A stretch of DNA of 64,000 bases, taken from positions 137,261 through 201,260 of the IMG/VR virus record IMGVR_UViG_3300044645_002359; one strand, written 5' to 3'. The translations under genes and the position numbers were made by a program. Shown in pieces: positions 4,507-42,838 of this stretch (within the stretch, counting starts at the first letter, position 1; every line of letters starts with the position of its first letter). The notes under the pieces were generated by a model. That model saw only the letters and a list, made by a program, of their open reading frames with translations, was not told the origin of the DNA and did not search any database.

Positions 4507-5777
4507 GTCAAAACTTAGTTGCATTAAATGGTGGAAGAAACCAAATTGAAACCTCTTCCACTTTTCAACAAGGTGTAAACCTATCACGACAGTATGTTGA
4601 CACCCTAGGGTTAAACCCTCAGCCCACTGAGTGGGTTCTGGGGGGCAGACCTATCTATGGACGATTACCTTCTGCCTCACAAGTCTATAAACTAGACTTT
4701 GGGCTTGACGATGACTCCGCTTACGCTTACGTTCCCGTGGGAAGCAGCTCCTTCGGAAAAGGTTCTCTCCAGGTTCAGTCTTCTGGAGACAATAAATTCT
4801 TAACCATACAGTCCGGTGAAATTGTTTGGAAGTACGGAAATTTAGCAGCAAACCCGGTTATCATATCTCTAGAAGAAATGGGAATGATAAGCACGAAGTA
4901 CCTTTTAGCTTATCAACTCTACTATGACGATTCCCCCTTTGTCGCTGAATATTCAGTTGAAAACTTTTCCTTATCCGGGTATGAATTGAGTGTGAGTAGC
5001 AGTACAGATGTGGTAGAAGGTTGGAGGTACACCCCTGTCTTCGCATTCACGGATCTTGAGTCTCAAACTTGGAGAAATTACGACGGTCTCTTCCCTTCTT
5101 ACTCCAGTGAAGCTTTTCTCTCTTGGCAGAGTCCTTACCCTGCCGCTTATTCCGACCTCACCTTAAGATGCCCTGCGAATTCTTCTGTAACAGGAACAGC
5201 TTCCCTGTACTATATGACTTGTCCCAATCCCGTGGAAGGGGAGACTTACTGTTCGAGCCCCGAATGGATTCTGCAAGGAACTACGAATGTTGAGTCTGAC
5301 ACCGACGGGCAATACTTTAAGTTTTCTTTCCCCCAGCCTTCATACCGCTACGGTTGGAAAGTCGTGTGGTCCGACATTAAAGTTACAATAAATAGAGTAC
5401 TCGTAAGCGGCGTTCTCTCTCTGCTAAGGAAACCTGCAACGGCGACAAGTTTTTTCCGCTTAATCGCCTACCCCGAAAATAGCGTCCCTAAGACTGTGAA
5501 GAATGCCATAGGAATTGAAGTTCCGACCACGTTATGCAAACTCGCTTACGTGGACATAAATGGAGCATATGAAGTTGAGAAGATAACTGACCTTAGAGAA
5601 ATAGTTCACACAGACTATCAACCTGTAGCTGACTGGTTGACTAAGGGATTTGACGAAAATTTGATCAACTTATTTTCACAAGTTAAAGAGTACCCTACCC
5701 TTTGGATGAGCCCCACCGAGTGCATGGTACAAGAATACCTCTCTTTGGAAGAGAAGTTGATTACAGTGGAGAAATGA
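4503..5777 (+). CDS. putative baseplate wedge protein
   Basis: 424 aa, ATGA overlap with the baseplate-J gene, beta-rich composition. Confidence 0.45.
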   Translation: MSQNLVALNGGRNQIETSSTFQQGVNLSRQYVDTLGLNPQPTEWVLGGRPIYGRLPSASQVYKLDFGLDDDSAYAYVPVGSSSFGKGSLQVQSSGDNKFLTIQSGEIVWKYGNLAANPVIISLEEMGMISTKYLLAYQLYYDDSPFVAEYSVENFSLSGYELSVSSSTDVVEGWRYTPVFAFTDLESQTWRNYDGLFPSYSSEAFLSWQSPYPAAYSDLTLRCPANSSVTGTASLYYMTCPNPVEGETYCSSPEWILQGTTNVESDTDGQYFKFSFPQPSYRYGWKVVWSDIKVTINRVLVSGVLSLLRKPATATSFFRLIAYPENSVPKTVKNAIGIEVPTTLCKLAYVDINGAYEVEKITDLREIVHTDYQPVADWLTKGFDENLINLFSQVKEYPTLWMSPTECMVQEYLSLEEKLITVEK

Positions 5778-5778
5778 A

Positions 5779-8616
5779 ATGACAGAGATTAAGCCCACAT
5801 TCAACGTAGAAGAGTTTGAAAATTACGGAAACACAAACTTTTTCCTGACCGCCGACCAATTAAACTCAGTAGCCCTAACAGAGAGTAGAGTAAATGAGCA
5901 ACTTGATTGGCTGGCACAATTGCTCGGGTGGAGCGGTCCTAACTACTGGAACAATCTTGTTTCGTCTGTTTCTCAGAAGAGGGGTCTACAAACCGGCACT
6001 TTCGGTGTGTATGACGGATATCTGTACCCCGAGATAGTTGAGGTCCGAAACTGGGAAAACAAAGTAATTGTGAAGGCAGACACGAGAATTCAGGTTGGTC
6101 AAACTTTCTACTTAGGAGATTACTCATACATCCTGTTGGGAATGAGCCAAGCTGGGGGGAATTACAGCTTGGACTTTGGAACTTTAACTGAGCAATTTTA
6201 CACCGATCTTTCCGGAAATGAGCAGCTCAAAGTAATCGCCCCGAAATCTCTTCCAAGCCCCTTCTACCGCCCAGAGCCAGGAGTATCAGCTAACGCCTCT
6301 TTTATTTGCGAGATTCAAGGTTCCAATCTCGTTTTGTTCCCCGACTATAACACCGAAAGAACACTACCCTACAAGTTTAACACTTTCGTTGCCGGAGGTA
6401 GATACTACTTTAACCTGCCTGTAACTCTCAGCAGTGATACGGTATCGCTTTCGCCTGCATACGACTTTTCCAGAGAACTATGGTACCTTAACATCCCTCT
6501 TAACTTGACAACAGATGAGTTAGGTTTGGAGGGTGCTCTTTCCTATGAAGGTTCAACTTTATTGGTTAGGGTATCTCCTTGGACGAACCCCTCAGATTGG
6601 GGAAATTATGATAAAATAAATAACTTCCGAGGGGTTTGGTCGAACAAGGGAGGTAAGTTGCCTTTTCACTTCGTCTTCGACGCTCTTAGCATACATGGAT
6701 TCAACGAAAGAGTTTCTCTTTGGTTGGGCAACGTTGAAAGATCAATAAAGTTTGATGAGCTCCTTGACTTCGTATACTATCAGACGGTTCCAATATCACC
6801 TGGAGAGCCAGATTTAGGGTACGGTAAAGTATGGTGGAACAGCCAATCCGGAAGTTTTTCGGTCTTTCTAGGGGATCCATTAAATTGCGGTCCGTGGGCT
6901 GAAGTGAACTACCCAGAGTTCCCTGAATTTGGACCCTTTCCTGACTTCGTTTTCCCGGATGTTTCAAGCTTTTCAACCTATACCGGAGATATACCAGAAG
7001 GGTGTCTTGTTACAATTTTAGACTTGTCAGGTTTGGACCCTTCCTTGGGAATTGAGGGTTTAACGCAGACTTTACTTGGTCCAGGACAGATAGAGATGTT
7101 CAGAAAAGAAAGTTCCGAATATTGGACACCTTATTTCATAGCATTCAACTTAGAAAGTGACTTTTCAGTGAACGCTGAGCTCTTGCCTTCTAGAACGCCT
7201 GTGAAACTCTTAGATTCCACGGGTTTGTCTCCCACAGGTGTTAATTATTCTGTTTCCAACCTGAGCCTTGCTGTGTCTGAGTCCTACCCTCTTCTCCTTA
7301 TGAAGGGTACTTCCGAGGGCTCTTGGTACATATCTCCCCCTTCAGACCTCAAATATATCGGAAATACGAGACTATTCGAAAGTTCTCAAGACTACGAAAA
7401 ACCGGTCGACGGGGAGATGAACTGGGACTTTTCAAACCCAGATCCAAAAACAAGACTTGCACGAGTTTTTTACTACAACCGCTGGGAACAAGACCTATTA
7501 ACGAGCGAATGGACATTAGCAGGGGACTGGGTTGGGGTGAATGATGGGACATCTTCTTCGTCGGTTCCAGAGGTTGTAGACTTTGGAGCCATACTAGTTT
7601 ACTGTAACGGGGAACTTCTCTCAGAAGGGGAATCCCTTAGACTACCAAATTTTCAGTTTAGTTTTGAAGTGGACCCCGGTACAGGGATTTTCAATTTCCT
7701 GTATGTGCCCTTGAACTACAACGGCTGCGTAAATCTACCGAAAATAACCGTATCGGACTCACTAACTTCTGCGTTTAAGTTCGATATCTCTAACCTGGTG
7801 TTCAGCGGTTTAACTTACTACATGTCACCAAATGTAGTAGACAGCGAAACTCTACTTAGGTTGTGGAAAAGTGAGCCACTTCACGTTGTTGATTCAATCA
7901 GTGAGCTTGAACTCTTAAGAAACTCTAACCCCTTGAGAGCAGATGTGAACCAAGGTCCTGGTGACATAAACTGGGAGAGATACTTCGTGCGTCTTCCTCC
8001 CGCTTATGGGAGAAATGGAAAAGAATGGCAAAAGGTTAACCTTATATGCCAGGACTTCGGTTACTGGGGTTCTTCTATAAGTCCCGAGAAAATGGCTTGT
8101 CCCTCTGAGCTAGCAGAGCCTAGAATCTACGAACAGGTAGTTCTTTACGGAGAAAGAGTAGACTCTCCTTCTTACTTATATTCTGAGCCTTACTTATACT
8201 CAGACGTTATGTATGACTTTGGAAATTCAGGCGACTACAACAATTCAGATATTGTCCCTGGCTTCGACAGGCCCTATGACGACTTTGACGAAGCAGAGCT
8301 TGTGAATTACAACCCTTTGCATAACCGCCAAGCAAATACTTCCTCCACAGGTACTGGCTACGGGGATTGGGAAGGAATTTACCTGCGCTCTCAAGCTTGC
8401 TCAAGTCTGAGTGGTTTCCTCGTTAACGATCTAAGCGACGGTTCTTTAGAGTCTTTACCGGCACCTGTGTGGGATGCAAGTATTTATAAGTGCCCCCCTC
8501 TCTGTATAGACGGGAAGGCATCGTCTACAGTCGACTCAAATCATTTCAAGATAGGGTACTCTTTCTTCGCCGCCGATCTTTCAGCCGCAGAAGAAGGGTG
8601 TTTTGACTTTGAGTAG
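5779..8616 (+). CDS. large virion structural protein (baseplate-associated)
   Basis: 945 aa; EQLDWLAQLLGW near the N-terminus resembles P2 gpI-like wedge motifs; operon context. Confidence 0.45.
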   Translation: MTEIKPTFNVEEFENYGNTNFFLTADQLNSVALTESRVNEQLDWLAQLLGWSGPNYWNNLVSSVSQKRGLQTGTFGVYDGYLYPEIVEVRNWENKVIVKADTRIQVGQTFYLGDYSYILLGMSQAGGNYSLDFGTLTEQFYTDLSGNEQLKVIAPKSLPSPFYRPEPGVSANASFICEIQGSNLVLFPDYNTERTLPYKFNTFVAGGRYYFNLPVTLSSDTVSLSPAYDFSRELWYLNIPLNLTTDELGLEGALSYEGSTLLVRVSPWTNPSDWGNYDKINNFRGVWSNKGGKLPFHFVFDALSIHGFNERVSLWLGNVERSIKFDELLDFVYYQTVPISPGEPDLGYGKVWWNSQSGSFSVFLGDPLNCGPWAEVNYPEFPEFGPFPDFVFPDVSSFSTYTGDIPEGCLVTILDLSGLDPSLGIEGLTQTLLGPGQIEMFRKESSEYWTPYFIAFNLESDFSVNAELLPSRTPVKLLDSTGLSPTGVNYSVSNLSLAVSESYPLLLMKGTSEGSWYISPPSDLKYIGNTRLFESSQDYEKPVDGEMNWDFSNPDPKTRLARVFYYNRWEQDLLTSEWTLAGDWVGVNDGTSSSSVPEVVDFGAILVYCNGELLSEGESLRLPNFQFSFEVDPGTGIFNFLYVPLNYNGCVNLPKITVSDSLTSAFKFDISNLVFSGLTYYMSPNVVDSETLLRLWKSEPLHVVDSISELELLRNSNPLRADVNQGPGDINWERYFVRLPPAYGRNGKEWQKVNLICQDFGYWGSSISPEKMACPSELAEPRIYEQVVLYGERVDSPSYLYSEPYLYSDVMYDFGNSGDYNNSDIVPGFDRPYDDFDEAELVNYNPLHNRQANTSSTGTGYGDWEGIYLRSQACSSLSGFLVNDLSDGSLESLPAPVWDASIYKCPPLCIDGKASSTVDSNHFKIGYSFFAADLSAAEEGCFDFE

Positions 8617-8617
8617 G

Positions 8618-8628
8618 CGGGTAAAATT
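8618..8628 (+). promoter_or_regulatory. putative late promoter box
   Basis: CGGGTAAAATT; GGG 29 nt before ATG 8648. Confidence 0.55.
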
Positions 8629-8647
8629 CTTTAGCTAAGAAACTAAA

Positions 8648-8950
8648 ATGACAACGAGAAAGAAAAAAGTGTTTTCCGACATTGAGAGTCTAGAACAAGG
8701 CTTAACAGAAGAGATTCTTGAAGAAAGTTTTTCATTACCCTCCTTAGAAGATTTCTCGGAGACCCCTGTAGAAAAGGAAGAGGAGCCAGAACCTATTGAA
8801 AAGGTGAAGGAAGTAACCGAAGAAGTGAAAGCTGAGGTTATTGAACAAGAACCCGAAGGGCAACCTGTTCAAGTGAGACCGAGACCGGCTGCTCCAGCTA
8901 AACGGATCCCTTCCAAAAACACTCCGAAACTTTCTGCTAAACTTAGGTAA
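8648..8950 (+). CDS. hypothetical acidic/Pro-rich protein
   Basis: 100 aa ORF directly after the promoter box; Glu-rich N-half, basic C-end. Confidence 0.55.
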   Translation: MTTRKKKVFSDIESLEQGLTEEILEESFSLPSLEDFSETPVEKEEEPEPIEKVKEVTEEVKAEVIEQEPEGQPVQVRPRPAAPAKRIPSKNTPKLSAKLR

Positions 8951-13687: not shown

Positions 13688-15451
13688 ATGACCTTTCAAC
13701 ACCCCTCTATAACACATGCTTCTCAACTTGACGAAAAGTCACGGTGGAGAAAGTATAAAAGAGGGATTCGAGAACTTGAGCTTCTTGAGGCCCCTAAATC
13801 CGTAATTCAAGAATTTAAGTACAAAGCAGCGAGAGATTGTTTCCTAGCCTTCTGCGACATCATGAAAAACGGGGACTTAAAAGTTGCCCCATTTCATGAA
13901 ATCATAGCCAGCGCTTTTGAAGATCTTTTTGAACGAAGGTACAGACGTCTCATTATATCGTGCCCTCCGCGTTCGGGGAAATCTATGCTTTCTACGATGT
14001 TTTTAGCGTGGCTGTTGGGTAAGGACGAAAGGACTCAGCATATCTTGGCTTCTTACGGTGCCACGCTGTCTCAAAAATTCCACAGAGAAGCTGTGGTAAT
14101 GATGAAAACCCCTTCCTATAAAAAGATCTTTCCTGAATTTTCTGGATTCAACCGGGATTCTAAATATGACTTAATAGGAGGTGGCTACATACTTGCGACT
14201 TCTGTGGGGGGTATTCTCACAGGTTTCACTTCTGGGACAATTGATATGGACTCAGTAGGTATTGGAGCGGCTTTGATCGACGATCCACTAAAGTCTTCGG
14301 ATTCGAAAGCAGCCCTAGACAACTTAGAAAGTTGGTGGGCAGAGCAAATGTCTACTAGAAGAACAAACCACTACGCTCAAGTTATCATTGCAACTCGCTT
14401 CCATGAGAAAGACCTTCACGGGGTGTTACTTGATGGGGATGGACTCTATGACCCTGGGGAGAACCCGTTCGGATGGAGATGGATCAACATCGCAGGACTT
14501 TGTGAGGACCCTGAAAACGACCCTCTAGGTAGACAACTTGGAGAGAGCCATTGGCCGGAAAATTCTGCCTTCTCTGTGCCTATGCTTGAGTCCCAGAAAA
14601 AGATCATGGGCAGCTTTAAGTTTGCCGCTCTATACCAAGGAGTCCCTGTAGCTTCCGAAGGGCAGATCGTAAAAAGCAGCTGGGTTGAGATCATTGAAGA
14701 GGAAGAATGCCCCGACCTGGATGTTGTATGGTTCGGAGTTGACTGTGCCTTTTCAGAAAGGGAGATGGCTGACGAAAGTGCGATCTGCGTGGCTGGGATA
14801 AGTACTCGGACACCGGACATTGTTTACATTCGAGACATTGTGAAAGGTAAATGGGGCTTTCCGGACTTAATTGAGTCAGTGAAGCAACAGTACGCCTATT
14901 ACAAAGCGAAAGTTCTTTGCATTGAAAAAGCAGCGTCGGGGCACTCTCTCATTCAAATGCTAAAGAGGGAAGCCAGGATCCCAATCGAAGAAATGCGTCC
15001 CTTAAAGTCGAAAACCACTCGCCTTCAGGCAGTCTGCCCTTTACTTGAGAACAGCCGCGTTAAACTAGTAAGGGGTCTATGGACCGATGCGTTCGTAAAA
15101 GAGTTGACCTCTTTCCCCTACGTAAGGCACGAAGACAGTCTCGACGCGATGGTCTGGGCGCTGACCTACTACTCTCTCAAACTTGATACCATCGACAGAG
15201 GGATTCAAGAGTCAATCGTTCAAAACCGAAAGTGGAGTGGCGATCTTCGCAGAGCCGCTTTTAGTGACGGCGCTTCTTACGGAAACCTGTTTGAGGATAA
15301 GGGCAGTGCCCTTGGCGGGCGTAGAATGCCTGGCGACGGTAGTTTAAACGACCCTGACTTTCAGTCTGCTAACACTCCGGATCAAGGTCTCTTCAGGGGC
15401 GGCAGGAGCAGAAACCTTCGCAGTGGGTCTGGATACAACCTTTGGAATTGA
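13688..15451 (+). CDS. terL: terminase large subunit
   Basis: Walker A CPPRSGKS, Walker B LIDDP, IATRFHEKDL, nuclease FGVDCAF and HEDSLDA. Confidence 0.92.
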   Translation: MTFQHPSITHASQLDEKSRWRKYKRGIRELELLEAPKSVIQEFKYKAARDCFLAFCDIMKNGDLKVAPFHEIIASAFEDLFERRYRRLIISCPPRSGKSMLSTMFLAWLLGKDERTQHILASYGATLSQKFHREAVVMMKTPSYKKIFPEFSGFNRDSKYDLIGGGYILATSVGGILTGFTSGTIDMDSVGIGAALIDDPLKSSDSKAALDNLESWWAEQMSTRRTNHYAQVIIATRFHEKDLHGVLLDGDGLYDPGENPFGWRWINIAGLCEDPENDPLGRQLGESHWPENSAFSVPMLESQKKIMGSFKFAALYQGVPVASEGQIVKSSWVEIIEEEECPDLDVVWFGVDCAFSEREMADESAICVAGISTRTPDIVYIRDIVKGKWGFPDLIESVKQQYAYYKAKVLCIEKAASGHSLIQMLKREARIPIEEMRPLKSKTTRLQAVCPLLENSRVKLVRGLWTDAFVKELTSFPYVRHEDSLDAMVWALTYYSLKLDTIDRGIQESIVQNRKWSGDLRRAAFSDGASYGNLFEDKGSALGGRRMPGDGSLNDPDFQSANTPDQGLFRGGRSRNLRSGSGYNLWN

Positions 15452-15469: not shown

Positions 15470-16867
15470 ATGACACCGAAACATCCAAAAATAACACACG
15501 TTTCCCAGCTATCGGAGCACTCAAGCTGGAGAAAGTACAAGAGAGAACTTCTTGAACTTGAAATGAATGGCGGCCACTGGGCAAAAACGACTGACTTAAC
15601 TAAAGAGTCTGTCAAAAATAGTTTCGCTGCCTATTTATCTCTCTCCACATCCGCACCCCTTCTAAACTGGGAAACTTATGAAGTCTTGGGGTCCGCCTTT
15701 GAAGACATTGCTGAAGGCAGGTACCCAATCCTCTTAGTATCAATGCCCCCCCGCACAGGAAAGTCAACATTGGGCTCTCTCTTTCTGTCATGGCTCCTGG
15801 GTAAAGACCCTGATACTAACCATTTCGTAACTTCTTACAATGAGGGTATCACCGACTTAGCAGTAAGTAGAGTTAAGCAGTTGGTTAGTGCCTTTCCTTT
15901 TGAGGAATTGTTTTCAAAACTTGATTTGCGGGCTGATAGCGTAACATCGGCTAACATCCCCTGGCGTAGGCACGGGTATCGTTCACCTTGGGGTGGACCC
16001 AACGGGGTACCAGGGGTTTGGTTAATCGATGACTATCACAAGTCCTCAAATATAACAGTAAATAAAGACTGGATAGAAGAGGAAATTATGACCCGGCGCC
16101 ACCAAAACAGTGCCATTGTTGTTCTCGGGTCAAGATGGGGTGATGAAGACATTTTTGGCTACTTTTTAGAGAAATTCGGTGTCTTTGACCCCGTATCAAA
16201 CCCGAAAGGAGCCGCCCACATTAATTTGTCAGCAATTATTGAAAGTAAAGAAGAGGCAGAAAATGATATTCTGGGTAGGAATGTAGGGGAAACCCCGAGT
16301 ATAATCAATTCCTTCTGGTCCCCCGAAAATCTGAACCATATTAGAAGGAATATCGGCGATGAAAAGTTCTCCTGGCTCTATAAGGGATGCTCACCGACAC
16401 CAGAAATCCCCCCATTAGATAGAGTTATCATTTCTGTTGATCCTGCTTTCAGTGCCGACAGCATTGATAAAACAGGTATTTGCATCGCAGGGGTTACAAA
16501 GAAAAGGGACTACATGTATGTTCTTGATACTTACGAAGGCAATTGGGACTTGAAAACTGTCGGAGTAATCCTAAGCCTAGCAGTTAAGGCATACGGAGCG
16601 GAAGAAATTGTACTTGAATCCGCCAGGGTAAGTGCAGCTTGGACTGTGTACCTACAGGACTTAGGGTTAAACGTTTGCGTAGGTAGCAAGTTGAAACAAA
16701 CCAAATTAAATGCCTTCACTCAAATGTTAAGCTCAGGGAAAGTAAAATTCTCTAATTCGGATACTCTCAGTGCGTTGGATGCCTGTGATAACTTCCAGAT
16801 TTCATTATCCGACACCATGTATGCAGTCTTAGTTAGCTACAGCCAACTACTGCCTGTCGTTACTTGA
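15470..16867 (+). CDS. terL: diverged terminase large subunit paralogue
   Basis: N-terminus HPKITHVSQLSEHSSWRKYKRE aligns with terL1; MPPRTGKS, LIDDY, ISVDPAF present; C-terminal HxD..DA motif eroded. Confidence 0.8.
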   Translation: MTPKHPKITHVSQLSEHSSWRKYKRELLELEMNGGHWAKTTDLTKESVKNSFAAYLSLSTSAPLLNWETYEVLGSAFEDIAEGRYPILLVSMPPRTGKSTLGSLFLSWLLGKDPDTNHFVTSYNEGITDLAVSRVKQLVSAFPFEELFSKLDLRADSVTSANIPWRRHGYRSPWGGPNGVPGVWLIDDYHKSSNITVNKDWIEEEIMTRRHQNSAIVVLGSRWGDEDIFGYFLEKFGVFDPVSNPKGAAHINLSAIIESKEEAENDILGRNVGETPSIINSFWSPENLNHIRRNIGDEKFSWLYKGCSPTPEIPPLDRVIISVDPAFSADSIDKTGICIAGVTKKRDYMYVLDTYEGNWDLKTVGVILSLAVKAYGAEEIVLESARVSAAWTVYLQDLGLNVCVGSKLKQTKLNAFTQMLSSGKVKFSNSDTLSALDACDNFQISLSDTMYAVLVSYSQLLPVVT

Positions 16868-17181: not shown

Positions 17182-17204
17182 GACCCTCTAACGAGGGTCT
17201 TTTT
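17182..17204 (+). terminator. rho-independent terminator
   Basis: GACCCTC-taac-GAGGGTC-TTTTT. Confidence 0.85.
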
Positions 17205-18894: not shown

Positions 18895-18919
18895 GGGGCT
18901 TCGGCCCCCCTTTTTTTTT
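18895..18919 (+). terminator. rho-independent terminator
   Basis: GGGGC-TTCG-GCCCC, CC, T9. Confidence 0.85.
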
Positions 18920-18961: not shown

Positions 18962-20587
18962 GTGAGTAGTAAATTCCTGTGGCAAAGTTTCTCCTCAAGA
19001 CTTGAAAAGGCAGGTGAGGAAGCCCTAAGAGCTCTCCAGGAAGAAGCAAGAATAGAAAAGCAAACTAAAAGTGCTTCTTCCCCTGAGGGAGACCACACAA
19101 GTCTAGAGATACAAAGGGCGAAGGAAAAAGCTTCTCAGTCTTCAGGGAAAGTTAAAAAATGTTCCACAGGCAAACCTTGTTCTGCGACGTGTATTCACAA
19201 AAATGATGATTGTATATCGACTTTGCCTGCTCCCCTTGGAATTGCCTTAACAAGGCTTTCTAAAGTCCTCTCCGAGCAAGTGGGCGAAAATAGAATTTCA
19301 GAAGAACAGGCAGAAGAGGTTGTATCAAAGATAAAAAGTACAGAAGATTCTCAACTAAAGGCGTTTGACCTCTTTAAGAAACTAGTTGATTCTGGTAAAG
19401 CGTCCGAGACAGAAATGGACTCGGTCGCCAAGCTCCTTATTAGCACCACTTTGACCCCTGGCCAAGACAGAAATGCCCCTCGTGTAATGAGCTTCGACGA
19501 TATCGAGGCGGTCTTGAAGCCAGGGAAATTAGAACAGCTAGAACAAGCTTATCAAAATTCTTTCAGCTCGAAAGGGAAATTCGACCCCTCTCAGAAAGGG
19601 GGAATGGGGGATCTAATAAGTTCGAAGTACCTGGTAAATAAGGTCTCAGATGAGGTTGCAACCGCTGCTTACTATATGCTCCCCTCAAAAGTGCGGTCTG
19701 CCATAGACAAGGCGGGTGCTGTTAAAGGAGAGTCTGTAATGTTCGCCGGCAATGATAAAGACGGTAACCCTACTTTTTCTGACAAACCTTCACGAGAGAG
19801 AGGAATTTTCTTGGTTAAACGCTGGATGGAACAAGGGGAACTGGACCCTTACACAGGAAAACCCATTGACATAAGAAATGCAGAGCCGGAGCACATGGTT
19901 GCATTCGCCCATGCACTCGCAAAGGGTGGTGGTGGTGACCAACCTCGCAACCTGCTTTGGTCGGCATCTCAACCAAACAACCAAAAAGCTGGGTCAGACG
20001 ATAATTTCATGGAGTGGAAAAAACGTCTTCAAGAGTTTAAGAAAATGGGTAGAGAGGCTTACGAACGTGAAGTATATAACCCCGCTGCAAACAAAGCCGA
20101 AGAAGCCAGAGGTAAGAAGGGTTCTGCCTCCGCAGATATAGCCAAAGCTTTATCGTCTCAAACACCAGAAGAAAGAATTGCAGGAGTGAAAGGACTGATA
20201 CAGGCTTACGGGGATAAAGTTCGATATCTGGTAAGAGCGGCTGAGGTAGGCTGGCAACATCAGGATAGAGACTTAGATCACAGAATGGGTGGCAAACCCG
20301 CGTTCATGAACAACGGGGTTCCAAAACTACCCGGAACCAATGTGAAGCCGAGCACAGCGGTTTTGGTAGCATTGGCTGCTGTGGACCCTTCGAAAAAAGA
20401 AGCTCTCAAGGAAGGGTTAGAGGATTTAAGAAAAGCTCGTATTTTGACCGACGGTGAAGCGCAGTCTGTGAGGGGGGATAATAGCGCACGACTTAAACTT
20501 CAGACGCAAAAGAGTTCAGACTACGGCGAAAAATTAGCGGAATTACTGAACAACTTTGTGCCCAATATAAATGTGATATTAGAGTAA
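18962..20587 (+). CDS. HNH nuclease-domain protein with N-terminal 4-Cys module
   Basis: DPYTGKPI...EPEHMVAF...DQPRNLLW...NNQK is an HNH pattern; CSTGKPCSATCIHKNDDC module. Confidence 0.65.
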   Translation: MSSKFLWQSFSSRLEKAGEEALRALQEEARIEKQTKSASSPEGDHTSLEIQRAKEKASQSSGKVKKCSTGKPCSATCIHKNDDCISTLPAPLGIALTRLSKVLSEQVGENRISEEQAEEVVSKIKSTEDSQLKAFDLFKKLVDSGKASETEMDSVAKLLISTTLTPGQDRNAPRVMSFDDIEAVLKPGKLEQLEQAYQNSFSSKGKFDPSQKGGMGDLISSKYLVNKVSDEVATAAYYMLPSKVRSAIDKAGAVKGESVMFAGNDKDGNPTFSDKPSRERGIFLVKRWMEQGELDPYTGKPIDIRNAEPEHMVAFAHALAKGGGGDQPRNLLWSASQPNNQKAGSDDNFMEWKKRLQEFKKMGREAYEREVYNPAANKAEEARGKKGSASADIAKALSSQTPEERIAGVKGLIQAYGDKVRYLVRAAEVGWQHQDRDLDHRMGGKPAFMNNGVPKLPGTNVKPSTAVLVALAAVDPSKKEALKEGLEDLRKARILTDGEAQSVRGDNSARLKLQTQKSSDYGEKLAELLNNFVPNINVILE

Positions 20588-20591
20588 AACC

Positions 20592-20927
20592 ATGAGGAGA
20601 GACAACCGCTTCCCCCGTCCCGACCGCTTCACCTTGGAGCAAGGTCTACCACCCGGCACACTGAGCCACCCTCAAGCCTATGGGGTGTGGTCGATTTTCT
20701 TGCAGTGCGACGATCCTCACGACGTTGCACACAAGTTCCGTTCCTACCGTGACAGCAACTTTTGTTCAATACCCCGTGAGCAACTCCGGGCAATGAGAGA
20801 CACCTTAATTCTTGGTATGAGGGAGTCAAATAAATCCTCGGCAAAACCGCTTAAGGAAAAGCAAAAAGGTCGGCACTATGCCGACTATGAGAATGAATGG
20901 GCGGAAAAGCCCCGCACTGGTGCCTAA
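20592..20927 (+). CDS. hypothetical protein
   Basis: 111 aa, tight spacing in operon. Confidence 0.55.
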   Translation: MRRDNRFPRPDRFTLEQGLPPGTLSHPQAYGVWSIFLQCDDPHDVAHKFRSYRDSNFCSIPREQLRAMRDTLILGMRESNKSSAKPLKEKQKGRHYADYENEWAEKPRTGA

Positions 20928-23240: not shown

Positions 23241-23612
23241 ATGGGTTTAGTTGAAATTCCTCTAATCATTGCCGGTTGGTTTCTCACAGCAGGAATAGCA
23301 GGAGTAGGCGGAACTTTTGCCATTCAGGGTCGGAACAATAAGAGATTAGACACACTAAGGAGTAACTCTGATAAGAAAATTGAAAGACTTATCGAGGAAA
23401 ATGACAAGAGAATTAACACTTTGATTGCTGCCAATACCCTCCAAAATGAGAACGTATTAAATCATATTAAGAACGTAGAAAAGGCTCTTAATGACATGAG
23501 AGCCGAATTACCGGAAAAGTACACTCTCAAGTCCGACCACTTAAGATTGGTAGACAAAGTAGAAGAGTTGTCGATACAGTTCTACAGACATAGAGAGAAA
23601 GAAGGTGAGTGA
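23241..23612 (+). CDS. membrane-anchored coiled-coil protein
   Basis: N-terminal hydrophobic LVEIPLIIAGWFLTAGIAGVGG, then a heptad-rich segment. Confidence 0.55.
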   Translation: MGLVEIPLIIAGWFLTAGIAGVGGTFAIQGRNNKRLDTLRSNSDKKIERLIEENDKRINTLIAANTLQNENVLNHIKNVEKALNDMRAELPEKYTLKSDHLRLVDKVEELSIQFYRHREKEGE

Positions 23613-24117
23613 GAGCTACGACTGGCACCGGCTGGAAGGTTTGGGTTTTGACCTGAACTACATTGAAAAGGCACTTCCTGCCTCATACAAAAAAGGTCTA
23701 ACTGCACGAGAGCAAGGTGTCGCTAAGCGTGAAGCGAAAGATACTATGGAGAAGGCCAGCAGCAAGAAAACCTCGGCGAAAGAATTGTATAAAGACTGGG
23801 AGTCGGATAAGAGTTTCCGGAATAGGGAAAAAGAGATACCGAAGTCCCCAGCCACAGAAGCATTTGAGCGCGACTTTGCTGAGTCTTCCCCTTCCGACAC
23901 AGCCCTTAAGAACAAGTCAAAAAAGTCCGGCATCCCTATGCCTATACTGAGACAAGTGTTTAAGAGAGGAATGGCAGCTTGGAGGTCTGGTCACCGTCCT
24001 GGTGTTGCACCGCAGCAATGGGCTCAGGCAAGAGTGTCAAGTTTCATCACGGGAGTGGGAGGAGCACGGAAGGCTGATGCCGACCTTTGGAAAAAAGCTA
24101 AGGGTAAAAAACATTAG
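23605..24117 (+). CDS. DUF5824-like domain protein (putative internal head protein)
   Basis: ALKNKSKKSGIP..ILRQVFKRGMAAWRSGHRPG..PQQWAQARVSSF. Confidence 0.65.
   Translation: MSESYDWHRLEGLGFDLNYIEKALPASYKKGLTAREQGVAKREAKDTMEKASSKKTSAKELYKDWESDKSFRNREKEIPKSPATEAFERDFAESSPSDTALKNKSKKSGIPMPILRQVFKRGMAAWRSGHRPGVAPQQWAQARVSSFITGVGGARKADADLWKKAKGKKH
24101..24111 (+). promoter_or_regulatory. putative late promoter box inside the 3' end of the upstream gene
   Basis: AGGGTAAAAAA; GGG 32 nt before ATG 24134; encodes KGKK. Confidence 0.45.
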
Positions 24118-24133: not shown

Positions 24134-24502
24134 ATGAGTAACTTGGGATCTTTTTCTCCGGAAGCTTACAGAGCTTACAAATATGGGGTTGAAAACCCGA
24201 GTAATTTCATGGGAATTGCTCCTGCATTCGAGGCAGAACCAGGGAGAAACCCTGATTCTTTTTCCATGGGCGAAGATGACGAGACTGACGAAGACGATTA
24301 CGATCCAGATTACGGGAACGAGGACTTTGAGCCGAACGGGGGCATGGCTATGACCCAACTTCGCTCTATGCAAGATAACATCGAGACTATTCTTGAAATG
24401 ATCGGTCCCTACTCAAACTTAGACCCCTGGATGGCTGCAAAGTTGGCCGAGGCTGAGCATGGTATGACAGCGATCGCCGACGCTTTACAATACAGAGATT
24501 GA
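24134..24502 (+). CDS. putative internal head protein
   Basis: Start moved to ATG 24134 (MSNLGSFSPEAYRAY); C-domain MAMTQL...LDPWMAAKL resembles small domains of cyanophage head proteins. Confidence 0.55.
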   Translation: MSNLGSFSPEAYRAYKYGVENPSNFMGIAPAFEAEPGRNPDSFSMGEDDETDEDDYDPDYGNEDFEPNGGMAMTQLRSMQDNIETILEMIGPYSNLDPWMAAKLAEAEHGMTAIADALQYRD

Positions 24503-24899: not shown

Positions 24900-25598
24900 A
24901 TGAAACACAACCACAGAATACTGCCCGGCCACATGGGAGGCGAGTACGTAGAAGGCAATGTTATACCTGTACAAGTAACTCAGTGTGACACTAACACTGC
25001 CAACCATGTAATGTGGCACTTTGCCAACTGGTGCCTTTATGGTAAAGAAGAAGATCGAGCAGCCTATAAAGGTTTATCAGGTTGTTATAGTAAAGAAAAA
25101 ATTATCGAGGAGAGGTTGAGACTAGCTGGTCAAATGCATGTCGATTCCGGCCACATTCAAGAAATAGGCAGGATTAACGGTAAGAGAGCCATGTCTCCGG
25201 GTGGATGGTTATACATGAACAGAATAGAATATGGGCGTTTAGGCTACAAATCAGGGATAGGAAAGTCGGAAAACAGGTTAACAGGGGAACAACTATCTGA
25301 GTTGGCTAAAAAGACTTGGAGAGAAGGGAAAGGTTTGGCAGCTTTAACTCCTGAGCAAAGAAGCGAAATAGGAAAAAGAGCTGGCAAAATTAGTGGACAA
25401 GTGAACAGAGAAAATAAAACAGGGGTTTGCGGAATTCCTCCAGAAGAACACTCCAAAAGAATGTCCGAAACGAACCGTCAAAAATGGCAATGTCCCGTGT
25501 GTGGTTTAATTGGTAATGCCAAGCAAATAAACGCGCATATGGCAGCTGAACATAATCTCGATAAAAAAGCCAAAATTAAGTGTAACTCTAACCACTAG
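24900..25598 (+). mobile_element. free-standing HNH-type homing endonuclease gene
   Basis: HNHRILPGHMGG...GNVI...NHVMWH...EDRAAYKGLSG N-domain, basic helical repeats, C-terminal WQCPVCG...HMAAEH zinc finger. Confidence 0.65.
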
Positions 25599-26330: not shown

Positions 26331-26852
26331 ATGTATAACCCAAGACCCTTAGACTTAGATACATTCTCAGAACAAGAGTTGCAAATCGAAGGGTACACTC
26401 ATATGCCCACGGATTATTACAGGAACACCGTCATGGAGCCTGAAACCGTCTCCACATTAAGACCGAGTTTCGGAGAGTATGAAGCCATGGGAGAGAGGCA
26501 CGAGGAAATCTCTTCTAAGATTGACTTACTCAATCAAGCAATGAAACTTTCCCGTCAGAGGGGGGCTTTTCAAGAGTTGCAGAATCAAATGGCTGCCGTC
26601 AAGAAACTTGTAAAAGAGCGTGAAGAAATTGATGCAAAAATGGCCACTGTTGACCTTGCCCGAAAGAAAACAGATGACCACAACATTGCTGCCGGTATGG
26701 AAACTTCTTACACAGAGCAACTGGATTCGGTAAACTCTCGCATCAACCGTTTACAAAAGCTTCTTCAGGACTTCAGTGAGTCCATGGGAGAAGGTGAGTT
26801 TGACTTTACTCGTAACGGTCGTAAAGGCAAAGCCTGTGAGGAGACACAATGA
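26331..26852 (+). CDS. coiled-coil putative internal head protein
   Basis: 173 aa; DTFSEQEL, DFSES and FDFTR motifs. Confidence 0.55.
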   Translation: MYNPRPLDLDTFSEQELQIEGYTHMPTDYYRNTVMEPETVSTLRPSFGEYEAMGERHEEISSKIDLLNQAMKLSRQRGAFQELQNQMAAVKKLVKEREEIDAKMATVDLARKKTDDHNIAAGMETSYTEQLDSVNSRINRLQKLLQDFSESMGEGEFDFTRNGRKGKACEETQ

Positions 26853-28129
26853 GGCGCTGCTCGAAAGGAAAAAGCTGCGGAGGAACTTGCATCAACCGCA
26901 ACGTTAAATGCAGAGCCACTTTGTCTCCGAAAGTATCAAAGCAGGTTGAGGAAGCGGGCGACATCTTCCTCCGTTTGGTTAACGAGGATAAAAAACCGAG
27001 TTTGATTGTACAAAGGCTGATTGACGCCTTAGGGTTGGGCCCACTAACTCAAAGAGAAGTTGGCAATGACTTTCCCGTCTTAAAGAGGGAGGCAGAACGC
27101 CAACTCGCTGAGTTGCGCAGCCAACCCTCTATGACAGATGAGGAGATTGATCGGGCCAAACGACTTGAAATGGCTCTTATGGATGCTTGGGAAAAGCATA
27201 CTAAGGCCGACCGCATGGTACTCTACGATCGACAGGACGCTCGAGAGTTTGACCATGATTTCATTCCTACCGACAAATTCGGCAAAGATTATGACTGGTC
27301 TCAGTCTTACGAATCTGGTGCCAAAGGTTTGGGCTCAGGAAGCTACGGAAACGTTATGCTCTCTAAACCACCACCGGCTCTTGTAGTGAAGAGAGGAGAA
27401 GTGAGTGAAAGTGAGGTTAAAATTCTAGAAAAGTTAAACGGTAAAGACATTTCTCCGAAGTTCGTTTCAGCGGAGGTCAACAAATACACCGTTATGGCGC
27501 GAGAAGGGGATATAGAATTCTACGAAGGAAGAATTGCAATGACACGGGTTCCGGGTAAAGCCGTAGAAGATTTTGATGACAATGATCCCGCATACGGGAC
27601 GAAGGTCGGAAGTACAACTCTTGGAGACGCTTATTTTCTTCTTCGTAGGAGACTTCACGAAAGCGGAGTTGCCCATAATGACTCTCACATAGAAAATGTC
27701 ATTGTAGATAATAAGGGGAAAGCACGCTTCATTGATTTCGGGCTTTCTCAGGACGACCCTAGAGCAGCTCTATCAGAGGCCATTGGCATACTTGCAGATC
27801 GAAAATTGCTTCCTCAAGGTGTTGTACTAAAACGAGTTTTAGATGATTTTTCCGGGGACCGAAAAGGAAGGAAATATAAAGCTTACACCCAACCCATAAA
27901 AGACCTTCTTAAGGGTGGCACCAATACCAACCTCGAAAAGGTTGTTCGTAATCGCACTAAAGTATACGCAGAGCTTGCAAAGCTAGGTTTATCCAAGGAT
28001 GAGATAGCTGAGCTTGTGGTTCATGAGTTAAACCAGCCCATCAGCTCCTACAACAAAGGTGCCTGGTCCAAAGTAAGCAAAAAAGATGCAATGCGGATTA
28101 TCCCCCTACTCTACGAAGGCGTAAATTAA
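26849..28129 (+). CDS. protein kinase-like enzyme with N-terminal 4-Cys module
   Basis: GLGSGSYG Gly-loop, VVK, E in SEVKIL, catalytic HNDSHIEN, IDFG; GAGGAG RBS. Confidence 0.8.
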   Translation: MRRCSKGKSCGGTCINRNVKCRATLSPKVSKQVEEAGDIFLRLVNEDKKPSLIVQRLIDALGLGPLTQREVGNDFPVLKREAERQLAELRSQPSMTDEEIDRAKRLEMALMDAWEKHTKADRMVLYDRQDAREFDHDFIPTDKFGKDYDWSQSYESGAKGLGSGSYGNVMLSKPPPALVVKRGEVSESEVKILEKLNGKDISPKFVSAEVNKYTVMAREGDIEFYEGRIAMTRVPGKAVEDFDDNDPAYGTKVGSTTLGDAYFLLRRRLHESGVAHNDSHIENVIVDNKGKARFIDFGLSQDDPRAALSEAIGILADRKLLPQGVVLKRVLDDFSGDRKGRKYKAYTQPIKDLLKGGTNTNLEKVVRNRTKVYAELAKLGLSKDEIAELVVHELNQPISSYNKGAWSKVSKKDAMRIIPLLYEGVN

Positions 28130-28290
28130 TGAAAAATGATCAAAAGTATTTGGAGCTAATGGCTCTCTACAAAAAAGTTCGAGGTAACCCGGATAAAATT
28201 AAACAAGCAGACAAAGTGTTGGATGCGGCTCTGAAACTTGGTAAGAGTGGTGTGAGTCCAGACGCAAAAGAAGCAGCGAGATACCTCTGA
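28129..28290 (+). CDS. small hypothetical protein (53 aa), absent from the ORF track
   Basis: MKNDQKYLELMALYKKVRGNPDK...AARYL*, TAATG-coupled to the kinase. Confidence 0.6.
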   Translation: MKNDQKYLELMALYKKVRGNPDKIKQADKVLDAALKLGKSGVSPDAKEAARYL

Positions 28291-41797: not shown

Positions 41798-42838
41798 ATG
41801 CTAGGGCGTAACGCATTACTAATGGCAAACGGTGGGACGGGTACGCCAGGCTTTGGGGTCAGGTTTAGCAACCCAGCAACTTTGCCGCCCGGAACAGGTT
41901 ACGGAGTTGCTTTTAGTCCTGATGGGTCCGCTATTGCGGTTGCTTCTAGTGCTACCGCATACCCTTGGTCGTCATCAGGATTCGGCACTAAATATGCCAA
42001 CCCTGCAACGCTTCCCGCAAGTTTTGCGTATTGCGTTGCCTTTAGTCCTTCCGGTGGATCCATCGCTTTTGGCCATTTTTCAAACCCTTTTATCACTGCA
42101 TACCCCTGGTCATCATCAGGATTTGGCACTAAATATGCGAACCCTGCGACGCTGCCAGGAGGCTATGTCCTGGGCGTAGCATTTAGCCCTTCTGGTGATT
42201 CTATTGCAGTAGCCGGAAACGGCTCTCCATGGCTTATTGTTTATGCCTGGTCATCATCAGGATTTGGCACTAAATATGCTAATCCTGCAACATTGCCTAC
42301 AGGGGTTGGCAATGCGGCTGCCTTTAGCCCTGACGGTGCTGCAATTGCGGTCTCCCACGTATCGTCTCCCCGTATTACCGCATACCCCTGGTCATCATCA
42401 GGATTTGGCACTAAATATGCGAACCCTGCGACGCTGCCCACAGGCGACGGCAAAGGTGTTGCTTTTAGTCCTGATGGTAGTGCCTTGGCGACTATCCATT
42501 TTTCAAGCCCTTTTATCACCGCATACCCTTGGTCATCATCAGGGTTTGGGGTTAAATATAATAATCCGGCAACATTGCCGGTTATGTCAATAGCCACCAC
42601 GCCCGCCATGGGGGTTGCGTTCAGTCCGGACGGGAGAGCCCTTGCGGTTGCGCACAATAACTCCCCACATATCACCGCATACCCTTGGTCGTCATCAGGC
42701 TTTGGTGCTAAATACAACGACCCGATCACTTTGCCGCCGAATGATGGCCTTGGCGTTGCCTTTAGTCCTGATAATAGCGCTTTGGCGGTTGCTCACGCAG
42801 ACAGCCCGTTCCTCTCTGTTTACACTTTCACCACATGA
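41798..42838 (+). CDS. 7-blade beta-propeller (WD40-like) protein, putative receptor-binding tip
   Basis: Seven ~47 aa repeats VAFSP.G..IAV....P.ITAYPWSSSGFG.KY.NPATLP. Confidence 0.75.
   Translation: MLGRNALLMANGGTGTPGFGVRFSNPATLPPGTGYGVAFSPDGSAIAVASSATAYPWSSSGFGTKYANPATLPASFAYCVAFSPSGGSIAFGHFSNPFITAYPWSSSGFGTKYANPATLPGGYVLGVAFSPSGDSIAVAGNGSPWLIVYAWSSSGFGTKYANPATLPTGVGNAAAFSPDGAAIAVSHVSSPRITAYPWSSSGFGTKYANPATLPTGDGKGVAFSPDGSALATIHFSSPFITAYPWSSSGFGVKYNNPATLPVMSIATTPAMGVAFSPDGRALAVAHNNSPHITAYPWSSSGFGAKYNDPITLPPNDGLGVAFSPDNSALAVAHADSPFLSVYTFTT
41860..42830 (+). repeat. coding tandem repeat, period ~141 bp
   Basis: A 59 bp stretch is identical at 42098 and 42380 (282 bp apart, two periods). 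Confidence 0.85.

Follow-up and report, generated by a model that had tools for sequence, protein, structure and literature searches.

Introduction

Kinases carried in the phage particle have been described for several cyanophages. According to the summary given in PMC10665884, the virion proteomes of S-CRM01 and S-TIM5 contain putative kinases, and that of S-CBWM1 contains its APH-, ChoK- and Rio2-like kinases. In the virion proteome of S-CREM2 the kinase ORF14 (open reading frame 14) is represented by 21 unique peptides and the small protein ORF13 by one, and gp15, encoded upstream, is present along with both (PMC10665884). We describe here a kinase gene (P0001) and the gene of a 53 amino acid protein which overlaps its end (P0002). 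Both lie in a 64,000-nucleotide stretch of DNA (the window), positions 137,261 to 201,260 and therefore the last 64 kb of the 201,260-bp IMG/VR virus record IMGVR_UViG_3300044645_002359. Judged by sequence relationship and structure modelling, the kinase is probably a virion-carried enzyme that is kept off until delivery.

A similar logic, i.e. an enzyme made late, packaged and injected to modify the host, is known from the ADP-ribosyltransferase Alt of T4, which travels in the phage head and is injected along with the DNA, and from the Dar proteins of P1, the virion RNA polymerase of N4 and the polyvalent proteins (PMC5512222). The kinase gp0.7 of T7 is thought to reprogram host proteins, as is proposed here for P0001, but it is an early product and has neither a partner nor a tag. 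No similarity to gp0.7 was found in the PHROG or Pfam scans, and the window kinase gene is located between terminase/PhoH and the tail fibres. A first-pass annotation of the window had treated phage kinases as early host-takeover enzymes only, a view which is outdated in the light of the virion kinases of S-CRM01, S-TIM5, S-CBWM1 and S-CREM2 as summarised in PMC10665884.

A catalytically intact kinase related to cyanophage virion kinases

Both ORFs and the kinase motifs GLGSGSYG, VVK, HNDSHIEN and DFG quoted in the first-pass annotation are confirmed by the ORF list and the translation (Table 1). The catalytic set is complete, as had been claimed, and it is also conserved. An alignment of 31 homologs shows no variation at K181, E189, H276, D278, H280, N283, D296 and G298, and at least 90% conservation of the ATP-loop glycines G162, G164 and G167. 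An AALSEA helix starts only five residues after DFG, so that there is essentially no activation loop. A word-index search returned 59 kinase homologs, nearly all of them metagenomic, on contigs of up to 280 kb. The AlphaFold2 (AF2) model is a confident bilobal fold with a mean predicted local distance difference test (pLDDT) score of 87.5 and a predicted template modelling score of 0.79; only residues 1-25 are unresolved (pLDDT <50). The features of the protein-kinase-like superfamily of eukaryotic and eukaryotic-like protein kinases (ePK/ELK) are all present: the Gly-rich loop, the beta-3 Lys, the alpha-C Glu, the HxD...N loop, DFG and the bilobal fold.

Known protein kinases were matched by Foldseek in the PDB at probability 1.0, and the sequence profile of the kinase retrieved WbdD, StkP and PknA among the solved structures (E 1e-7 to 1e-5). 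The Pfam scores are all below the gathering cut-off (Pkinase 23.3 versus 31.7, APH 21.9 versus 23.2, ABC1 19.9 versus 22.9) and the matches are confined to the catalytic loop; PHROGs gave a single weak kinase match, phrog_3297 'kinase' (E 3e-4). The kinase had earlier been assigned to the atypical Bud32/RIO/ABC1 type. 'Atypical' is a fair description, while the subfamily assignment is not supported: the matches to Pfam are below threshold, and of a RIO/Bud32 signature neither Pfam RIO1, the Kae1-associated Bud32 family, the Rio2 winged helix nor KEOPS partners were found. Sequence identity to Rio2, Rio1, Bud32, WaaP and APH(2'') is 13-16%, the Pfam RIO1 and Kdo matches are not significant, and the winged-helix domain of Rio2 and the KEOPS partners are absent from the window kinase system. 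As canonical kinases lie within ~1.5 Z units of Rio/Bud32/WaaP/APH, the subfamily is not assignable. By alignment and predicted fold, P0001 is a catalytically intact minimal 'eukaryotic-like' kinase, Rio/Bud32/APH-like and without an assignable subfamily. It does not belong to the polyvalent-protein kinase clade of Iyer et al. 2017, which has lost the C-terminal subdomain (PMC5512222), whereas the window kinase stands alone as a protein, keeps its C-lobe and has an extra helical domain.

By tblastn the kinase matches only cyanophage kinases (S-CBWM1, S-CRM01, S-CREM2, S-B68, S-H34, S-N03 and others), with E values of 2e-12 to 3e-5 to those detected in virions; homology is supported by blastp. 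Among the predicted viral structures of BFVD the best match is an 821 amino acid protein, which is the length of S-CRM01 g130, and S-H34 and three S-CBWM1 kinases are among the best; the S-TIM5 kinase is matched by predicted structure only, at rank 37. The virion kinases of S-CRM01, S-CBWM1 and S-CREM2 are thus sequence relatives of the window kinase, which by homology is a member of the cyanophage virion-associated protein kinase family and as such is not new. As relatives have been detected in virions, delivery with the DNA has a published precedent; for the window kinase it is a reasonable reading by homology, and the idea is not new for the family.

The closest described kinases are gp113 (RIO-like), gp161 (ChoK-like) and gp162 (APH-like) of S-CBWM1, which are 24-31% identical to the window kinase and have the same N-terminal four-cysteine (4-Cys) module. 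They differ in size, having ~290-320 residues, and the ~110-residue helical linker and the C-terminal domain ending in LYEGV of the window kinase are not clearly present in them. This C-terminal domain is clear in metagenomic paralogs only and not significant in the kinases of S-CBWM1, S-CRM01 and S-CREM2. The window genome has one kinase and S-CBWM1 four. S-CRM01 g130 and S-CREM2 gp14 (755-821 residues, T4-like cluster C) belong to a different lineage (Kyanoviridae) and have a core 26-30% identical to that of the window kinase, with a long unrelated N-terminal extension and no 4-Cys module.

In some relatives two or three kinase paralogs stand in tandem (locus L007 at 6001-8659, the contig of P0046, and loci L064, L074 and L090), and several of these paralogs each have their own partner gene. 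This suggests a lineage-specific expansion of the kinase-partner cassette.

The coupled 53 amino acid partner

The small ORF had been proposed as a coupled partner of the kinase, which is borne out by the TAATG overlap of the two genes and by conserved adjacency. Homologs of 52-54 residues, with the same TAATG overlap, are found 3' of kinases that are 67%, 44% and 40% identical to the window kinase. Pattern retrieval of partner loci from IMG/VR gave only three, and 75 kinase loci were fetched in its place. A partner homolog is present in 63 of these. It is directly 3' of a kinase-core ORF in 47 of the 58 cases that could be assessed, and 7 of the remaining 11 are directly 5' of a kinase-core ORF with a 9-nucleotide gap, so that 54 of 58 partners adjoin a kinase, in two unrelated cyanophage lineages. 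The pairing is also seen for the long T4-type kinases without the Cys module. Where a phage has a second kinase paralog, the partner is encoded behind one of the pair; in locus L006 this is not the paralog used as query.

A profile of six metagenomic partners was compared with the 513 stop-to-stop segments of four isolate-phage loci and had three matches only, S-CRM01 g129 (1e-14), S-CREM2 gp13 (2e-9) and S-CBWM1 gp114 (1e-8), each of which is the ORF directly 3' of a virion kinase. As the profile finds homologs at the same position in distant phages, the 53 amino acid ORF is a real gene. Identity of gp114 to the window protein is 31% (E 1e-5); g129 and gp13, 3' of g130 and gp14, are ORFs of 78 residues and have a ~30-residue N-terminal extension over the 53 amino acid partner. 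The penultimate Tyr is kept in all 57 unique partners and Y7 in 98% of them, and the C-terminus is nearly always x-Y-[LIV]. The two-gene module can be described as a 52-80 amino acid protein with Y..L...Y...R ... G-V-S ... x-Y-[LIV]-COOH adjoining a kinase, and this arrangement is what the window contains. Neither Pfam nor PHROGs gave a match for the partner, and a sequence comparison with solved structures gave nothing below E 0.18. On these sequence comparisons P0002 is a conserved, translationally coupled kinase partner, and it appears to be new.

The predicted complex

Modelling of the pair, suggested together with the guess that the small protein could be an inhibitor, gave a result that matches this guess. 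The predicted complex scores 0.86 versus 0.00 for the best of three controls, and the partner is placed in the active site. The mark used for this score is attained by 58 out of 80 solved complexes and by 2 out of 110 mismatched pairs, counts which are only rough since own alignments were used. Three runs share at least 90% of the contacts, and the pLDDT of the partner is at least 85. The predicted interface is the catalytic cleft, with the G-loop (159-167), V179, K181, the hinge (238-241), D278, residues 280-285 and I295/D296, and it takes in part of the C-terminal domain of the kinase (393-397). In the model Y52 contacts the lining of the adenine pocket (V179, I295 and D296), R51 contacts residues 282-285 and 295-296, and R18 contacts the catalytic D278; the invariant S43 is outside the interface.

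The model supports binding of the two proteins, and the predicted pose is that expected of an inhibitor occluding the ATP site. Inhibitors occupying the cleft of a kinase include p27Kip1 on CDK2, with Tyr88 in the ATP pocket, PKI on PKA and HipS on HipT. The modelled partner would resemble p27Kip1 in crossing the cleft with an aromatic residue at the adenine site, a likeness without homology and to be taken as a lead only.

The N-terminal 4-Cys module

The first ~37 residues of the kinase are a portable basic module whose motif is kept throughout the kinase family. It conforms to C-x5-C-x3-C-[IV]-x5-C and lies at the N-terminus or close to it; 33 diverse copies all retain the four Cys, and the mean net charge is +4.6 over 24 residues. 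Pfam has no model for the module, and PHROGs gave no match for the kinase N-terminus. A search of 1.84 billion representative proteins with a 38-column profile found 856 clusters at E<=1e-3. Among the 144 best new matches, on which the count of positions is based, the strict motif is present in 143 and a single copy in 107, and in 105 of the latter the module starts within the first 80 residues.

The proteins headed by the module include, besides kinases, ADP-ribosyltransferases (10 of 88 proteins; P0137 is above the Pfam cut-off) and the HNH nuclease P0187, also above the cut-off. Multi-copy giants combine it with LPD1 (a polyvalent-protein domain), LRAT/NlpC-type and alpha/beta-hydrolase domains, and in Aphanizomenon phage CL131 it heads a 1,811 amino acid protein adjoining a tape-measure-like gene. 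For the protein with module and ADP-ribosyltransferase the contig is just 1.4 kb, the matches in related loci all come from the HNH-type protein, and no ADP-ribosyltransferase is near the kinases in the fetched loci. The tag on ADP-ribosyltransferases and on the LPD1 giant recalls the Alt and polyvalent systems, with no sequence relationship to them. Targeting of Alt depends on a capsid-targeting sequence that is cleaved off, not on a Cys module. In the survey of polyvalent proteins the word 'cysteine' is never used (PMC5512222).

A second module protein is encoded in the window. The module of P0061 (541 residues) is related to that of the kinase at a profile-profile probability of 96%, and the protein is 43-45% identical to S-CBWM1 gp174, a 'virion structural protein' whose gene lies just 5' of that for the major capsid protein. 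A more remote relationship links P0061 to gp12 of S-CREM2, 'Cas9/Csn1 (virion protein)'. P0061 looks, from its sequence, like a second tagged effector, a nuclease. Locus L096 repeats the gene order terminase, PhoH, module-HNH.

S-CBWM1 has five module carriers (gp106, gp113, gp161, gp162 and gp174). All three of its kinases that the summary in PMC10665884 reports from virions carry the module, while its fourth kinase, the PknB-like gp173, has no module and is not among the kinases reported there. In gp113 and gp161 the module is encoded in frame 5' of the annotated starts (MSKRCTKGKSCGATCI, L011 ~5000-5060, and MGKNCSKGKSCGSACV, L001 ~7995-8051, respectively), and the GenBank start codons of both genes appear to be set too far downstream.

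The match P0134 (527 residues) contains nine tandem module copies after a hydrophobic signal-peptide-like N-terminus. It may be a secreted, non-phage protein, and its repeats hint at the module being an autonomous small metal- or disulfide-stabilised fold.

The first-pass annotation had placed the kinase behind a 4-Cys module. A module of this kind was found at the N-terminus of the kinase itself, where it is the more unusual feature; it may or may not be the separate upstream element then described. That element may be a 232 amino acid protein (24900-25598, + strand) whose N-terminus, MKHNHRI.PGHMGGEYVEGNV, is conserved and whose C-terminus has a zinc-finger-like CPVCG...H....H motif; the protein has only weak Pfam zinc-finger matches and a homolog at the same position in L096.

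From sequence and by analogy we infer that the module would be a small metal-binding knuckle serving as a tag for virion-borne effectors and possibly binding DNA. The portable 4-Cys tag and the active-site-plugging partner appear to be undescribed in the literature and databases examined.

Genomic context

The kinase had been placed in a late gene cluster, and its location in a structural-gene block agrees with this: it follows terminase and PhoH and is directly 5' of a tail-fibre/baseplate protein gene (Table 1). The upstream genes encode the large terminase subunit and PhoH, with a second terminase-like ORF besides; three tail-fibre-type proteins of 1,216-1,589 residues are encoded directly downstream. 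In a comparison with 50,697 phage records the Synechococcus phage S-CBWM1 alone was related at the DNA level, its terminase gene being 65% identical. As psbA was not found in the 201-kb fragment, the assignment of a cyanobacterial host rests on kinship with S-CBWM1. At the protein level the cluster is syntenic gene by gene with S-CBWM1 gp106-gp116, the ORFs at 20592, 21337, 21869 and 23241 matching gp107, gp108, gp109 and gp112, and the kinase is the positional equivalent of the RIO-like gp113. The common order is PhoH, a module-bearing protein (the ~520 amino acid gp106 in S-CBWM1, the 541 amino acid HNH-like protein in the window), small genes, kinase, small ORF, and a baseplate/fibre protein of ~1,570-1,590 residues.

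Table 1. Coordinates and characteristics of the kinase locus in the window.
Feature	Position	Strand	Remarks
Kinase gene, 426 aa (P0001)	26849..28129	+	ORF list, translation, family alignment, AF2, fold searches
Kinase domains			N-terminal 4-Cys module; helical linker ~27-137; core ~140-320; conserved helical C-terminal domain ~338-426, end LLYEGVN
4-Cys module core C-x5-C-x3-C-I-x5-C, residues 4-21	26858..26911	+	CSKGKSCGGTCINRNVKC; basic; unresolved by AF2 (pLDDT <50)
Glycine-rich ATP loop GLGSGSYG, residues 160-167	27326..27349	+	Translation, alignment
VVK, residues 179-181	27383..27391	+	K181, invariant beta-3 lysine; V179 and K181 predicted contacts of partner tail
Catalytic loop HNDSHIEN, residues 276-283	27674..27697	+	H276, D278, H280, N283 invariant
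DFG, residues 296-298	27734..27742	+	Alignment, AF2 model
53-aa partner gene (P0002)	28129..28290	+	TAATG: starts on last base of kinase stop codon, one-base overlap
P0002 conserved residues			Y7, L10, Y14, R18, G41-V42-S43, invariant penultimate Y52
Tail-fibre/baseplate protein, 1589 aa	28343..33112	+	45% identical to S-CBWM1 gp116; anchors structural-cluster context
173-aa ORF 5' of kinase	26331..26852	+	Weak sub-threshold coiled-coil-type family matches; stop overlaps kinase start (ATGA)
Second module protein, 541 aa (P0061)	18962..20587	+	Module residues 67-84 (19160-19213); HNH-like motif from residue 308
Last strong intrinsic-terminator-like hairpin 5' of cluster	18895..18908	+	Hairpin scan

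The 173 amino acid ORF directly upstream of the kinase has no detectable similarity to S-CREM2 gp15 or S-CRM01 g131, so that a conserved three-gene module is not claimed. In a scan for terminator-like hairpins on the + strand, strong ones were found at 17182, 18085 and 18895 and weak ones afterwards at 24240 and 31029, with no strong terminator between 18,908 and 31,029. As only weak sites follow 18895, kinase and tail-fibre gene may, from their context, be co-transcribed.

Further observations concern other genes of the record. Two adjoining + strand ORFs at 13688-15451 (587 residues) and 15470-16867 (465 residues) match the large-terminase PHROG 38 (E 2e-80 and 7e-26) and could be duplicated or split terminase-like genes. 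A DUF5824 protein (23605-24117, + strand) has a match to PHROG 3041 'cytidyltransferase' in the last 100 residues of that family, and DUF5824 recurs in the corresponding cluster of loci L005, L006, L008 and L009; cytidylyltransferase/NMNAT-like proteins are another class reported from cyanophage virions (PMC10665884). Between 40001 and 44000, where the third fibre gene ends and a 346 amino acid WD40/beta-propeller protein is encoded (41798-42838, + strand), the local G+C content rises to 0.51-0.53, against ~0.46 in other parts. Two metallophosphatase-family ORFs outside the window (G000:C1:71502-72041 and 112320-112877) may be counterparts of the kinase; S-CBWM1 also encodes two putative Ser/Thr phosphatases (gp40 and gp47).

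Discussion

Homology, synteny and modelling partly support the overall interpretation first given to this locus, and suggest the following scheme. The kinase would be produced together with the structural genes. Its coupled partner would bind it ~1:1 as a helical hairpin across the inter-lobe cleft, with the C-terminal tail pushing Tyr52 into the adenine pocket (V179, I295, D296) and Arg18 pairing with Asp278. ATP and substrate would thereby be excluded and the enzyme be silent in the producing cell. The basic 4-Cys module, probably a small metal-binding knuckle, would mark the kinase as virion cargo, like other tagged effector enzymes. In the next host the kinase would enter with the DNA, shed its partner and phosphorylate host targets before phage gene expression. 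We give the complete scheme, a kinase that is virion cargo, silenced by its partner, tagged by its module and injected, an even chance of being correct; the late timing, the packaging of the window kinase, the binding of a metal, the inhibition by the partner, its release upon delivery and the nature of the substrate are what we infer.

A wider reading, tentative and in our judgement rather doubtful, is that the module is a general tag bringing effector cargo into the virion and the 53 amino acid protein a 'safety catch' on the kinase, the two forming an unrecognised effector-delivery system of large aquatic phages. The tag cargo would then be kinases, ADP-ribosyltransferases, HNH nucleases, lipase/NlpC-type hydrolases and polyvalent-giant units, perhaps riding on the packaged DNA, and the partner would follow, by analogy, the logic of the immunity proteins of secreted bacterial toxins.

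Several points weigh against the proposed scheme. Its genomic basis is an incomplete genome, the completeness estimate of the record being ~71%, and the virion content of S-CBWM1 is taken from the summary in PMC10665884 together with GenBank product names. Abundant regulatory proteins may, according to the S-CREM2 authors, co-purify with virions in CsCl (PMC10665884). The virion kinases S-CRM01 g130 and S-CREM2 gp14 are without the 4-Cys module, so that the module is not a universal packaging signal. The partner is not obligatory, as S-CBWM1 gp161 and gp162 have the module and no partner gene, and R18, which faces the catalytic Asp in the model, is conserved in just 81% of the 57 unique partners. 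The modelled active-site pose would fit a substrate or cofactor equally well. Finally, WaaP, APH and WbdD are in structure comparison as close to P0001 as protein kinases are, which does not separate a protein kinase from a small-molecule kinase.

The co-purification caveat leads to the explanation that the kinase acts late in the producing cell, on assembly or structural proteins or on host factors, and is not delivered, its relatives in virions being co-purified or trapped. The position of the gene among structural and assembly genes would suit this, and the module-less kinases also reported in virions weaken the idea of a dedicated tag. We consider it unlikely all the same, for kinases have been detected in four independent cyanophage virion proteomes according to the summary in PMC10665884, and the S-CBWM1 kinases listed there are the three with the module and not the one without. 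Moreover the tag also heads ADP-ribosyltransferases and nucleases, classic types of injected protein (cf. T4 Alt, PMC5512222), and a coupled active-site blocker would be senseless if the enzyme should act when it is made.

The partner, for its part, might be a substrate of the kinase, might activate or scaffold it in the way Cgi121 does for Bud32, or might serve as a chaperone or adaptor for folding or capsid loading. That the pair is conserved and co-translated would be expected in this case too, the single ORF13 peptide in S-CREM2 virions (PMC10665884) indicates that the partner may travel with the kinase, the invariant Tyr and Ser of the partner could accept phosphate, and a structure model does not distinguish inhibition from substrate docking. 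The modelled tail, however, fills the nucleotide pocket (V179, I295, D296, L285 and hinge 238-241) and not the peptide groove; an Arg without a hydroxyl faces the catalytic Asp, and S43 would be away from the kinase. The kinases without a partner (gp161 and gp162; a partner gene was not found for 39 of 86 kinase-core ORFs) suit a regulator better than an essential subunit, and we see only a small chance for a role other than inhibition.

It is quite unlikely, in spite of the structural closeness described above, that the enzyme acts on small molecules or glycans, as kinases of the APH/ChoK/WaaP/WbdD type do, and modifies a sugar, a lipid, an antibiotic or an envelope component. Pkinase is the top-scoring Pfam family and many homologs have precomputed Pkinase matches, the protein kinases or ATPases Rio2, Bud32 and Rio1 score equally well, the Hanks-type StkP and PknA are close behind WbdD, and the neighbourhood is without any hint of a small-molecule pathway. 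A toxin-antitoxin-like or superinfection-exclusion cassette, by chance among structural genes, is very unlikely: the layout fits, with an enzyme that could be toxic and, co-translated behind it, a small protein predicted to bind and block its active site, and recalls HipT/HipS, but there is no Pfam similarity to HipA or other toxin kinases, the position between head and tail genes is fixed in lytic-type large phages of many lineages, and the virion proteome data and the N-terminal tag common to effector enzymes would be left unexplained.

The locus described here offers three handles on the role of the kinases in cyanophage particles, on how they enter the particles and on how they are tolerated during assembly. 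The predicted mechanism of the partner is specific, with a Tyr in the adenine pocket and an Arg on the catalytic Asp, and open to a test by two point mutations, and experiments are feasible because the cultured relatives S-CBWM1, S-CRM01 and S-CREM2 have the kinase-partner pair. As the tag is common to at least 856 protein clusters with effector-like cargo, its sequence could help to predict injected phage proteins. If injected cargo is indeed what the tag marks, the effectors that act first in host takeover could be discovered systematically in abundant aquatic phages, and the tag would be a possible tool for loading foreign proteins into phage particles.

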